A DNA stretch of 63,899 nt, counting the filler, from Perkinsus chesapeaki ATCC PRA-425 (lineage: Eukaryota > Protista > Perkinsozoa): assembly GCA_013115145.1 (NCBI GenBank). It is 10 parts of 10 records of this genome, joined end to end, with 100 filler letters (N's around TTAATTAATTAA, not from the genome) between each part and the next. Parts side by side here need not be neighbours in the genome. Positions count along the whole stretch, not along the records: positions 50,899 to 56,222 come from JAAPAO010001171.1; 9 more parts are not named here. One strand, 5' to 3'. Position 1 is the first letter of the stretch. Each line of letters starts with the position of its first letter. A program made the translations under genes and the position numbers. Positions 51,458 through 56,042 of the stretch are shown in pieces. The notes beneath the pieces are model-generated. The model was not told the DNA's origin, did not search any database, and was given only the letters and a program-made list of their open reading frames with translations.

Positions 51458-54400
51458 ATGGCCAACGTGGACGATCTACTAAAAAGCGTTGAAAAGACTC
51501 AAAAAGATGTTCAGTCAGTAAAAGGACAAGTCCAGAGCGTCGCCGGTGAGTTTAAGTGAGTAAGTCATTTAGAGTTACTCTGAAACGTCAGAAAAACTGA
51601 AGGCAATCAAGTCTCAAGTGGATCAGCATAAAGTAGCCAAGAATGGTACAGCTGCGGCTGTGAACGCGGTGTTCGTACAAAAGGAACTAGACAGAGCTCG
51701 AGGACTTATCTCCAAGTAGATACCGAGACCCTGTTGGCGTCCCTAGAGTTCTCGCCCTAGGTTCATGACAATGATACAAGTCCCTACTGACGCTGCTGGT
51801 GGGGGAGCACAGGATGAGGCTGTTGCTGCTGCCCAAGCAACAATAGACATGTTGGCTAAAAGAAAAAACGCTACAGACGATCTGACGAGGCCACTGTAGG
51901 GTTTTGGGGGGCTACTGTAGGGACCACAGAGCCGTGAGCAGATTCGAGCGACTAGGCGGGGATACTGCCCTTGAGGCATGTATCAGTCTGGTTTATGCTA
52001 AAGCGCTGAAGGATCCGAGAACTCGGTAGAGAGTCGGTGGTGTAAGTTTTGTGGAAATAACATGGGTGCAGGGCCTACTTTGAGAAGAATCAGAGGAAGA
52101 TAGACTCCATTAAAAAGAAGATGCACCAATTTCTACTGGGCCAATTTGGTAAGGCACCAGATCGTTGGTAACCAGTTGTTGCGTAGGCGGCACTTCTAAC
52201 TATGACCCTGATGACCTGAAAATGATGCATTATCAAATGAATATTACTGACTTTCAATTTGATGTGGTATGATCCTGATACGTTGCTGCTTAACTGAGAG
52301 ATGCCTTCACCTCAGATGGCCGAGCTTTTTCGCCACGCTTTCGAAGATACTGGGGCACATCCCAACGCAGTGAAAGTGATGGCTTGCTGCCTTTGACAGG
52401 ATATGAGACCGCCTCATTGTAGGATGCGATGAGGGCTCTTGGACGAGTGAGGAAGTCGATCACGACCGGCTGCACTGTTCGGATGGAGCTGGCAAGGCGA
52501 AGTATTGAAAAAGGCAAAGACGGCCTATATAAAAGGTACTTGGGGAGAGGAGTAAGTAACGGTACTTTTTGCCAAGGCTTGGCGAGGCTGATGGCATCAG
52601 AAACCTTATGGACAGAGTTTACGAGCTGGTCGTTAACGATCAAAGGCTCAAGGCGTTCTTTGCCGACAAGGACATAGAAAAGTACGACTGCTCTAGACTG
52701 TGCCGCACTTAGATTATGCTGTAGGGTGAAGAACTCTCAGTTGGTGTGGATAGCAGCGGCTCTCGGAGGCCCTAAGACATATTCAGGTCCGTTTTGTAGC
52801 GCAGCGTCCGGCGGAGTGTTGCTCGTTTCTTTAGGCAGAGATCTGCCGGAGGTTCACAGAGATCTCGGAGTCGACGACTATCTGTTTGATTCCTTTATAA
52901 TGAACTGTGAGAAGGCTCTTAATGGCCTTGGGATTGAGGAGGATGTTATGGACGAGGTAGTAGGGTGGTGGCCATTTCACAAGGGAAGGGATCGGGTAAC
53001 TTAGGATGTTATTGTCTGCGCTGCTCCTAGCGAGCTTAGATAGGATTCTCTCGGATGTATTTCTCGCTATTGGATGTGTGGTATATCATATATTTCTCCG
53101 CTATTTGTGGCTCGTTATTTGAATATATTTTATATCTTAATTGATGGTTACCGTCCGGTATCATGGTCACATTCAACTTTACTGCTCAATCATTATGACT
53201 GTCAACTCGCTCCTCTATTGTCTTACTTCACTTCACAATACCAAGGTTCTGGTATCACTAGAGCCTGCAAGGGATGGAGTGCTCTGCCGCAAGGCCGGCC
53301 TAACAGCCGCGTCCAAGTTGGTCGGCGGAAAGACTGTCCTGGAACGCCTTGGCGGAGAGATGAACTTGGAGGCAGTTATCGAGACCATGTAAACCGCACG
53401 CTTTTCGCGAGAACTCGTGGTTCAGGATATTTTTAGGTACTCTGGGTGCCTGCTGGATCCTCGGGTGAAATACTTCTTCTCTAAGGACTCCTCTAAGATG
53501 AGCCACATCAAGTCGAAGATGGTAACCAGCGCTATGAGTATCTTACATTTATGGACCCTGCACGGATGACAGGTTCAGCTCCTGACGGGTATGCTAGGAG
53601 GGCCGCAGCTGTACCCAGTGGATAAGCTCCGAGCAGTTCACTACGGCCTCAACATTACGGACTACCAGTTCGATGCTGTCCTGGAGAACTTCCAGGTTCG
53701 GCTCCTGACTCTGAACTTGGCTGAGGTTCCCTCAGGTTGCTGCTGGCATGATGGAGGTTGAAGCGACGGTGCTTGAAGATATGCTGGAGGTGCTGAGGTT
53801 CACTCGGAGCCCTATTACGTGTGGGTGCACGGTGAGGCTGGAAATCGCTAGGAAGAAGACGGAAAGTGAAGGTGAGGAATGATGCCTGTGAAGGTTGTGT
53901 GGCGCGTGACGGAATGCGATCTTCCTGGAGTCTTGAGGACAAAGTCTTGAAAGTCTATCACTATTAAGTGGCGTGTGACGGAACGCGATCTTCCTGGAGT
54001 CTTGCGGGCAAAGTCTTGAAAGTCTATCACTATTAAGTGGCGCGCGACGGAATGCGATCTTCCTGGAGTCTTGAGGACAAAGTCTTGAAAGTCTATCACT
54101 ATTAAGTGGCGCGTGACGGAACGCGATCTTCCTGGAGTCTTGCGGGCAAAGTCTTGAAAGTCTATCACTATTAAGTGGCGCGTGACGGAATGCGATCTTC
54201 CTGGAGTCTTGAGGGCAAAGTCTTGAAAGTCTATCACTATTAAGTGGCGCGTGACGGAATGCGATCTTCCTGGAGTCTTGAGGACAAAGTCTAGAGAGTC
54301 TATCACTATTAAGTGGCGCGTGACGGAATGCGATCTTCCTGGAGTCTTGAGGACAAAGTCTAGAGAGTCNNNNNNNNNNNNNNNNNNNNNNNNNNNNNNN

Positions 54401-56042
54401 NNNNNNNNNNNNNNNNNNNNNNNNNNNNNNNNNNNNNNNNNNNNNNNNNNNNNNNNNNNNNNNNNNNNNTATCACTATTAAGTGGCGCGTGACAGAATGC
54501 GGCCAGTGTCTAGTCTTAACGATATGAGATGCATCAATGAGTTTCTCTCATGATGAGATTGTTATCACGTACGGGTGCGGTTACTAACGACCCTCTCCTG
54601 TTCCCGTCTCCCCCCCTGTTGCATCTGAACAACCTCTGCTCGTTCGAATTGGCTCTATTTGGCTCCCACCGCTGATGTCACAGGTACAGAAGGCCTATTC
54701 TCTACCCTCGGGAAGGAGGAGGGCATCACCAAATGGGTCTCGAAAGTATACGATAAGGTTCTGGTCGATGATAGGGTGAAGCACTTCTTCCAAGGATCAA
54801 AATTGGACGCGGTGAAAGAGAGCCAAGGTGAGAATCGCGGGACAGAGGACCCCTACCTTGGGACTGAGTTTTTCGTTCTTCCCGGCGCCAGGGTTGCACG
54901 GTTGATTGCCCTGTCTTTTAGGAAAGTACTTCAAGCAGCTGTTTGGTGCTTCGACGGGCTACCAAGGCCGTGACTTGCCGGATATACACGCCACAATACA
55001 GATCTCCGACTTCCATTTCGATTCCTTCATGGAACATTGCCGAGAGACCTTCCAGCTTATGGGATTTGATGCTGACACCATAGATGACTGTAAGCAGCTA
55101 TTCTGAGTGCGAGGCCTGGGGCGTGGGCTGCGTGCAATCTGTGCAATTGTAGTGTGAGGGATTGATATCCTTATCGTCTTAGCCTGTGTCCTACTCGGTT
55201 AAGCAAGTGATCGTGATAGTTACTACTTCTAGGCAACTCTTGTCGACTGTAAAACTTTGAGCCGATGGCATTAACCAGCTGACAACGGTATGCTCGTTCT
55301 CGTGGGCTAGTGATGCACATTTCACAGGATGGATTCCGAATAGGTACGGTGCTGATGGAGTCGTTACGGTTGCAGATTGTTAATAAGGAGCTTATGAACC
55401 ACGATGTGAAGAGAGCGATCGAGATGGCTAACCAGAAGCCACTGTAGGGTACTCGAAGATGCAATAGTTGAAGCTCGGGCAGATACGACCGTCTTGGTGG
55501 AGAGAACACTATTGATAAGCTTATTGATTTGACTTACGATAAGGCGCTGAAGAATAACACACTGCGCAGTTTCTTTGAGAAGAACAAGGCTAAGATTACA
55601 TCTATAAAGAAGAAAATGACGCAGTTTATCGGAGGTCTCATTGGCGGCCCGGTCACATACGATGTGAAAGATCTCCTGTAAGGCGGCGGAGGAGGTGTGA
55701 GCGGCGGGTAGGCCCAGACGGATCTTCAGACCGGTGCATTACTCGATGAACATCACGAACTTTCACTTCGATGTGATGCTGACGATTCTCACCGAAACGC
55801 TCCTAAAAGACATGGAGGTCGAGAAGTCCATGGCTCGAGAACTGATGGCCGCGCTGCAGCCTGTTCGGTCTGATGTCACCACAGGATTCACTATAAGGAG
55901 CGAATTGGCGCGGAAAAATACAGAGAAAGGTGGTGAATGATTCGACTCCGTGTGGCTCGGGTATGTCGGATGTTTCAGGGTTGGACCATCTGTTTGCGAG
56001 GATTGGAGGAAGCGAAGGCATTGTGAAACTTGTGGACGCTCT
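51458..56042 (+). CDS. Multi-domain truncated (2/2, group I-like) haemoglobin: N-terminal coiled coil plus at least 6 globin domains, truncated by the gap
   Basis: Phase-consistent exons give domains starting FERLGGDTALE (~51900), YKRLGEADGI (~52520), LERLGGEMNLE (~53335), FSTLGKEEGI (~54695), DRLGGENTID (~55485) and FARLGGSEGI (~55990). The five complete domains each have B10 Tyr, CD1 Phe, GG/GA hinge, proximal His and (H/Q/L)FD. Intron 53872-54683 is phase 1 (G|GT). Confidence 0.92.
53899..54501. repeat. 69-bp tandem repeat inside globin intron 53872-54683, spans an N gap
   Basis: Unit aaagtcttgaaagtctatcactattaagtggcgcgtgacggaatgcgatcttcctggagtcttgagg(a/g)c at 53941, 54010, 54079 and onward; about 7 copies before the gap. 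Confidence 0.96.

Follow-up and report, generated by a model that had tools for sequence, protein, structure and literature searches.

Truncated haemoglobins (trHbs) have mostly been studied as single domains. Multi-unit group I (T1/N) trHbs, with several 2-on-2 domains per polypeptide, were recognised in silico in eukaryotes by Hade et al. 2017 (IUBMB Life 69:479; cited in PMC7475203 and PMC7082302), and Chlamydomonas THB5 carries four 2/2Hb domains. Here we analyse a gene of the clam parasite Perkinsus chesapeaki ATCC PRA-425 (assembly GCA_013115145.1) that lies at 51458-56042 of the window, that is, the whole stretch of 63,899 nucleotides under analysis, within the part at 50899-56222 (contig JAAPAO010001171.1). 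A preliminary description of this gene assumed that group I trHbs are usually single-domain, which is true, although the multi-unit cases above were already on record. As a whole, the locus is best explained (probability about 0.8) as one truncated gene encoding a helical N-terminus and an alternating chain of two classes of group I trHb domain, termed A and B, which would act as a haem array handling O2 and nitric oxide (NO).

Many short open frames lie on the + strand of 50899-56222, and they become coherent only after splicing. When the model was rebuilt from the DNA with the introns placed by hand, 21 exons and 20 introns, all GT..AG, gave a single open frame of 802 codons running on the + strand from the ATG at 51458, the first Met in an open frame that begins at 51395, to 56042. 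In this gene model 17 of the 20 introns are counted at 38-52 nt, the remaining sizes being given as 94, 254, 289 and 812 nt. So many short introns that stay in phase and yield repeated globin sequence cannot have arisen by chance. The product comprises an N-terminal helical region of ~116 aa, then five complete group I trHb domains arranged A-B-A-B-A, then the beginning of a sixth. DNA similarity to the locus of a Perkinsus olseni orthologue covers 2307/2408 exon bases vs 715/2177 intron bases, and it breaks at the three long introns. The parts of the piece, all on the + strand, are as follows.

50899-51457, +: 5' flank or untranslated leader; 3/559 bases align to the P. olseni locus.
51458-51895, +: exons 1-3 (51458-51545, 51592-51715, 51761-51895), N-terminal helical region, residues 1-116; conserved across the family, with helices predicted on the orthologue.
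51942-52524, +: globin A1 and the conserved A-to-B linker helix, exons 4-8 (51942-52025, 52072-52148, 52187-52266, 52316-52375, 52423-52535); Tyr B10, Lys E10, Met E11, His F8.
52525-53335, +: globin B1, from the end of exon 8 through exons 9-11 (52577-52681, 52725-52786, 52835-52956) to the start of exon 12 at 53246; Tyr B10, Gln E11, Phe G8, His F8.
52957-53245, +: 289-nt intron ahead of helix H of B1; P. olseni DNA similarity ends at 52961 and resumes at 53244.
53336-53871, +: globin A2 and linker, exons 12-15 (53246-53388, 53437-53521, 53573-53695, 53736-53871); exon 14 scores 23.6 bits to Bac_globin.
53872-54683, +: phase-1 intron between A2 and B2, with a 69-bp minisatellite (53899-54369), an N gap (54370-54469) and a last partial unit from 54470; stops in all frames, site and phase shared with relatives.
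54684-55483, +: globin B2, exons 16-18 (54684-54827, 54922-55089, 55344-55443); exons 16 and 17 match Bac_globin profile positions 2-46 and 49-104.
55090-55343, +: 254-nt intron ahead of helix H of B2; the corresponding P. olseni interval is only ~47 nt.
55484-55989, +: globin A3 and linker, exons 19-20 (55483-55677, 55730-55929); exon 19 scores 29.5 bits to Bac_globin.
55990-56042, +: first 17-18 residues of globin B3, exon 21 (55979-56042), then a GTGAGT donor; the orthologue goes on with B3, A4 and B4.
56043-56222, +: start of intron 21, A+T-rich, up to the contig end; 0/180 bases align to P. olseni.

The spliced model was searched against databases exon by exon, and the identical database protein was used as the query afterwards. 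Over all 802 residues the model equals GenBank KAF4650832.1 (hypothetical protein FOL47_000835 of P. chesapeaki; UniProt A0A7J6KV97), which at 803 aa has one extra terminal Leu; its contig, like the piece at 50899-56222, measures 5324 nt. The preliminary description could not tell whether the gene was catalogued; it is already deposited, with the same exon structure, as a hypothetical protein. With exon 19 as the query, a HMMER library search found 98 proteins at E values up to 0.001, mostly with several matched stretches each and up to 14, and P. olseni hypothetical proteins came out on top. The first 810 residues of one of them, KAF4665176.1 (FOZ61_000135), align end to end with our model at 82% identity and with no gap at any junction, and past the aligned part this protein continues with B3, A4 and B4. 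In P. chesapeaki, a GTGAGT donor stands directly after 56042 and the contig ends 180 nt further on. By this comparison the contig is judged to truncate the gene and to carry the 5' two-thirds of the nuclear gene FOL47_000835. The last stretch, 56060-56222, is A+T-rich and of low complexity, unlike the rest of the piece (48.6% G+C overall), shows no alignment to P. olseni, and may be intron 21 or assembly-end junk. An Rfam scan of 50899-56222 gave no match.

Eight full-length relatives were compared: two genes of P. olseni, a pair of P. chesapeaki paralogues, two MMETSP transcript proteins of Oxyrrhis type and two proteins from environmental sequence. Each carries exactly eight domains, ordered (A-B)x4, behind an N-terminus of ~100-120 aa, and measures ~1150-1230 aa overall. 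The (A-B)x3 triplication first proposed for this gene was therefore replaced: the chain is (A-B)x4, cut by the contig end. A ninth relative, P0016 (1225 aa), has the same eight domains and is encoded by an uninterrupted open reading frame (ORF) on an environmental contig of 35% G+C, so its globins are joined without splicing. That contig (JGI 3300081888, 1-4524), with same-strand neighbour genes 58 and 44 nt from the P0016 ORF, points to a very compact genome poor in introns, which carries a protein seen elsewhere in Perkinsus and Oxyrrhis. The MMETSP protein P0132, marked 'complete', shows 8 Bac_globin stretches and is colinear with residues 7-803 of the P. chesapeaki protein at 46% identity; its close relative P0120 is catalogued under Oxyrrhis marina. 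By homology, these Oxyrrhis-type transcripts support one chain at the transcript level.

The annotated models of the family are themselves uneven. In the locus of the 2375-aa KAF4665176.1 (JABANN010000101.1), a model with 16 globins, the first eight-globin unit ends in ...GYSVK followed by a TGA at 8756-8758. With the next ATG, 136 nt further on at 8895, a second N-terminal helical region begins, and the eight-globin unit behind it ends in ...GYTAK. KAF4665176.1 most likely represents two tandem eight-globin genes that the annotator fused. Another model, KAF4754373.1, joins the same two P. olseni genes at a different point and adds an unrelated N-terminal gene, part of which extension is also found in KAF4743795.1. 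In the B1 region of KAF4665176.1 (residues ~313-318), a 6-residue insertion, EQAVLS, sits exactly at the exon 10/11 junction; it is absent in P. chesapeaki and in the model of another P. olseni isolate, and is likely a mis-called splice site.

Between A2 and B2, the interval 53872-54683 separates two parts of the model. The 69-bp minisatellite at 53899-54369 has 6.8 copies with 95% matches. The N run at 54370-54469 starts exactly at a unit boundary (the preceding unit ends at 54369), the sequence past the gap opens with a unit start and then decays to unique sequence, and the unit spacing over the gap is 169, or 69 plus 100 N. All three + frames of the repeat contain stops at least every 31 codons. 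The array is therefore non-coding and the frame across the N gap is irrelevant, so that the question becomes whether 53872-54683 is an intron. The last base of the exon before 53872 is the first of a Gly codon, whose other two bases come from the exon at 54684 (phase 1). At the homologous codon, and in the same phase, the A3/B3 junction of this gene is interrupted by a 49-nt intron. In the P. olseni orthologue, an intron of ~275 nt in ungapped sequence splits the A2/B2 codon in this phase, and in the tandem P. olseni paralogue the junction holds an ordinary intron of 52 nt. DNA similarity to P. olseni stops at 53876 and picks up again at 54677, each only a few bases from a splice site, and the junction is continuous and gap-free in P0132 and in the uninterrupted 1225-codon environmental ORF. 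On these comparisons we read 53872-54683 as an intron in one gene, as the preliminary description had proposed from the splice phases. As a separate observation, the minisatellite (53899-54369, 54470-54501) shows in its first copies a two-unit higher-order pattern, in which units of the form ..GGAACGCG..TTGCGGG and of the form ..GGAATGCG..TTGAGGA take turns. The 69-bp repeat itself is absent from the orthologous P. olseni intron and from the other fetched loci, the environmental ones included.

The same interval could be taken as the boundary between two genes, since it is the longest intron and holds both the minisatellite and the assembly gap. Reading through its donor meets a stop three codons on (53880-53882), so a first gene might end soon after 53871, and a second might start within 53872-54683, either at the ATG at 54550, which could splice in phase to 54684, or at a trans-splice acceptor at 54683/54684; Perkinsus genes can, moreover, be just 136 nt apart. 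This division would split the A linker in the middle of its motif, however, and exon 16 lacks an in-frame Met. Inside the interval, the sequence, ATG 54550 included, shows no alignment to P. olseni. The ordinary 52-nt intron of the paralogue and the contiguous junction in the Oxyrrhis-type transcripts and the intronless ORF speak for a single gene as well. Two genes are therefore very improbable, and a second gene starting from ATG 54550 was rejected on the same evidence.

An earlier end of the gene, after B1, was also considered. If the B1 donor were read through, translation would go on as ...VVGWWPFHKGRDRVT and meet a stop at 53002-53004. We rejected this candidate because the spliced start of exon 12 (VLVSLEPARDGVL) is homologous to the start of exon 18 after B2 and to the orthologue, because the equivalent read-through at the B2 donor stops after 4 codons and gives no helix H, and because the P. 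olseni alignment restarts exactly at 53244.

The contig is short, contains an internal N gap and ends within an intron, and Perkinsus has many paralogues and fragmentary models of the multi-globin family. The locus might accordingly be an assembly artefact, with paralogues collapsed or joined into a chimera, or else a decaying copy, a fragment of a pseudogene. Against this, the frame is open over 21 exons with all splice sites intact, and the key residues are kept in all five complete domains. On either side of the gap the sequence follows one and the same P. olseni locus colinearly, which supports physical adjacency of the gap flanks, and each domain is sister to the same-position domain of the P. 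olseni orthologue. We regard this explanation as still less probable than a pair of genes, and one continuous gene as the reading to retain.

The affinity of the domains with group I, as suggested in the preliminary description, was borne out by Pfam scores, key residues and predicted fold. Exons match the Pfam family Bac_globin (PF01152; gathering cut-off 21 bits) colinearly: exon 19, the N-terminal half of A3, scores 29.5 bits (profile 3-62), and exon 14, the middle of A2, scores 23.6 bits (profile 49-92). Below the cut-off are exons 16 and 17, the two halves of B2 (15.6 bits, profile 2-46, and 14.2 bits, profile 49-104), and exon 9 of B1 (13.3 bits). The ten shortest exon pieces gave nothing usable in the Pfam search. 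KAF4650832.1 as a whole reaches 219 bits over 5 stretches. The best solved relatives are group I trHbs, first that of Tetrahymena pyriformis (3AQ5).

Two domain classes emerge from both identity and phylogeny. Inside the P. chesapeaki protein, identities are 38-47% for A vs A, 30% for B1 vs B2 and 21-29% for A vs B. In a maximum-likelihood tree of 68 domains (from the P. chesapeaki gene, 8 relatives and outgroup trHbs), one clade (support 100/98) holds all 28 of 28 even-position domains, and a second (100/97) holds all 28 of 28 odd-position domains along with three short fragments from the database that belong to this family, so the expected odd and even clades were indeed found. A and B together are set apart from the other trHbs (96/86), and within either class same-position domains of different species fall together, each P. 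chesapeaki domain being sister to its P. olseni counterpart. The identity matrix is correspondingly a checkerboard, with 47-55% at the same position, 31-43% within a class and 21-28% between classes. The checkerboard and the clustering by position indicate that the eight-domain order is older than the split of these lineages. With respect to its deeper origin, the introns before A1 (51895/51942) and before A3 (55443/55483) share position, phase and the donor sequence CCACT/GTAGGG, while A2 has no intron there. These shared introns, together with the slightly higher similarity at an offset of four domains, are a weak sign that an (A-B-A-B)x2 duplication took place long ago. We do not claim this history: mean identity is 39.5% for offset-4 pairs vs 35.7% for offset-2 pairs, and the tree leaves the point unresolved.

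Residue positions were set by alignment to PDB mutants named in their titles (3AQ7 Y25F, 3AQ8 Q46E, 3AQ9 Q50E, 2GKN GlnE11Val). His F8 is present in 56/56 family domains. Tyr B10 is found in 21/28 domains of each class, and all five complete P. chesapeaki domains have both residues, in agreement with what had been noticed at first. In the A class E10 is Lys or Arg (27/27) and E11 is Met (22/27), whereas in the B class E10 is small, E11 is Gln (21/28) and G8 is Phe (24/27); E7 is hydrophobic in both. The alternation of Met and Gln at E11 proposed earlier holds in all three A domains and both B domains of P. chesapeaki. The two Gly-Gly motifs (AB and EF) were counted as present in A1, A2, A3 and B1, yet the AB hinge has a single Gly in B1 (LGE) and B2 (LGK); the EF hinge of B2 reads FGAS instead of LGGP, with loss of the second Gly-Gly. 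Among the short motifs listed in the preliminary description, the linker (T/C)G.T.R.E.AR recurs after A1, A2 and A3 and K.SQ is found in B1 and B2, but K..SIK.KM.Q fits A1 and A3 and not A2, which has His at the Ser position. In the A-to-B linker (..TxGxTxRxE.A+), the Gly and Arg are invariant in 23 didomain units, while the B-to-A connectors are variable. Taken by the usual marks, Pfam score, His F8 in every domain, a 2-on-2 fold and the Gly-Gly hinges with Tyr B10 place these domains in group I. At least two units come from one gene or mRNA according to the gene model, the orthologue and paralogue introns, the transcripts of a relative and the intronless ORF.

A structure prediction, which had been named as a check, returned the 2-on-2 globin fold. 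AlphaFold2 (AF2), run on A2-B2 of the P. olseni orthologue with the family alignment, gave a mean predicted local distance difference test (pLDDT) of 86.8, and the linker was modelled as a well-ordered helix packed between the domains. With Foldseek, this model matched group I trHbs at a target template modelling (TM) score of 0.82-0.93 and a root-mean-square deviation of 1.2-1.8 Å (T. pyriformis, M. tuberculosis HbN, Paramecium), and group II ranked lower. For the N-terminus of the orthologue, AF2 predicted helices at 4-44, 57-78 and 91-110. Residues 18, 21, 25, 28, 32, 35 and 39 are hydrophobic and fit a/d heptads, a clean run that occurs in the first helix only. Of the ~115-aa coiled coil postulated initially, the helical character is thus retained, as three predicted helices, but clean heptads are confined to the first. 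It is plausible from the model that this first helix is a coiled coil, and the three amphipathic helices together may form a coiled coil or a helical bundle. No hydrophobic signal-like or membrane segment was seen anywhere in the protein, so it is most likely cytosolic.

An eight-globin chain with conserved linkers might also be a precursor, cut at the G-x-T-x-R linker or at the B-to-A connectors into single globins or A-B pairs, by analogy with the light-harvesting and RuBisCO polyproteins of dinoflagellates. The family occurs in Perkinsus and Oxyrrhis, both relatives of dinoflagellates, for which polyproteins are a known habit (PMC3747160), and the invariant linker Gly and Arg could mark a protease site. 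The predicted linker, however, is an ordered, packed helix rather than an exposed loop. Two marks of dinoflagellate-type polyproteins, which also release their units by proteolysis, were looked for and not found: there is no presequence-like hydrophobic segment at the N-terminus, and in place of the near-identical units of known polyproteins there are two diverged classes with 21-43% identity between positions. The position-specific conservation of all eight domains over a long evolutionary distance further suggests distinct roles for the individual positions of an intact chain. A polyprotein is on balance unlikely, though not negligibly so, and we proceed with the intact chain.

As for what an intact chain would do, the Tyr B10/Gln E11 pair of M. 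tuberculosis HbN stabilises O2 and supports NO dioxygenation. Each domain of the Perkinsus protein would bind one haem b via His F8. The B domains, with Tyr B10, Gln E11, a small E10 and Phe G8, would bind O2 and convert NO to nitrate in the manner of HbN, and the A domains, with Lys E10 and Met E11, would hold a different haem, either ligated internally or better shielded, and would thereby tune or re-reduce the adjacent B haem. The whole chain would form a high-capacity haem array for O2 and NO, possibly oligomerising through the N-terminus. The fixed pairing of A with B via the conserved linker suggests that the two haems cooperate. In its general form, a cytosolic multi-haem protein handling O2 and NO, this proposal has in our estimate about an even chance of being correct. 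A bolder version would treat the A-B pair as a heterodimeric module with an invariant linker helix, in which A haems serve as electron relays that re-reduce B haems after each NO-dioxygenation cycle, so that four modules make a multi-haem redox wire on an oligomerising stalk. To our knowledge a self-contained wire of this kind is not known for any globin, and we consider it unlikely. In Chlamydomonas THB1, THB2 and THB4 the sixth ligand of the haem is Lys E10 (PMC7082302); by analogy, the A haem might conceivably be hexacoordinate through Lys E10.

Several points weigh against the reading of the locus as a single, functional haem array. In two RNA runs from the same species coverage was zero across the whole piece, so that the gene has no transcript support in P. 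chesapeaki. The identical GenBank model possibly comes from an ab initio predictor and hence adds no independent support. The predicted TM score (pTM) of the A2-B2 model, 0.59, does not fix the relative orientation of A and B, and the model of the N-terminus is moderately confident (pLDDT 68, pTM 0.26), giving no defined tertiary arrangement. Lys E10 is found in pentacoordinate HbN too, and is therefore no proof of hexacoordination. Haem binding, ligand chemistry, oligomerisation and cellular location all rest on prediction.

This family fixes eight trHbs in a strict alternation of two classes. Conservation of each position goes back beyond the divergence of Perkinsus and Oxyrrhis, an argument that the chain functions as a single unit. 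With this family one can ask, in a natural system, why globins concatenate and what the pairing of Met E11 with Gln E11 achieves. Perkinsus species are major shellfish parasites, and O2/NO handling may matter for their survival in haemocytes or anoxic tissue. The suggestion that the protein deals with host NO has nevertheless been weakened, since the free-living Oxyrrhis marina has the same eight-domain protein; a purely anti-host origin is unlikely, and the family cautions against an exclusively host-directed reading. The GenBank models of the multi-globin family need correction, as some fuse tandem genes and some are cut by contig ends.

Among known systems, the first half of P. olseni KAF4665176.1 is the closest, an orthologue at 82% identity with the same exon junctions, N-terminal helices and A/B order. 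P. chesapeaki FOL47_010479, FOL47_008915 and FOL47_003438 and P. marinus PMAR024501, PMAR008889 and PMAR012632 are paralogues of the same architecture. All of these are unnamed hypothetical proteins, and in comparison with them the present P. chesapeaki copy lacks its 3' third owing to the contig end. Further away, Oxyrrhis marina MMETSP0469 (EP00451 P012213, 1158 aa) and MMETSP Transcript_10881 (1154 aa, 'complete') share the N-terminal helices, eight Bac_globin units and the same linker motif, and align colinearly with the P. chesapeaki protein at 46% identity. They differ in coming from a free-living heterotroph and in being derived from mRNA, which places the chain on one transcript. A literature search, which did not extend to the contents of Hade et al. 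2017, found no paper on Perkinsus or Oxyrrhis globins. Concatenated trHbs are a known kind, while the alternating eight-domain family with N-terminal helices looks undescribed in print, though its sequences are public.

The single-domain group I trHbs of T. pyriformis (3AQ5), M. tuberculosis (HbN, 1IDR), Paramecium (1DLW) and Chlamydomonas (THB1, 4XDI) are the best matches in sequence and fold. Tyr B10, His F8 and the Gly-Gly hinges are common to them and the Perkinsus domains, and the Tyr B10/Gln E11 pair to them and the B domains. The A domains differ from them in that Met replaces Gln at E11, and B2 differs in being without the second Gly-Gly. Multi-unit chains also occur outside the A+B clade: the volvocine alga Astrephomene gubernaculifera (P0020, 640 aa) has 5 near-identical, homotypic units, and a transcript of the diplonemid Lacrimia lanifica (P0014, 1882 aa) has 12 homotypic units. 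Unlike the Perkinsus family, both have Gln at E11 throughout the units sampled, with Gln or Leu occupying E7, and no A/B alternation. These multi-unit trHbs are independent of the Perkinsus chain, and hence the concatenation of trHbs has arisen several times.

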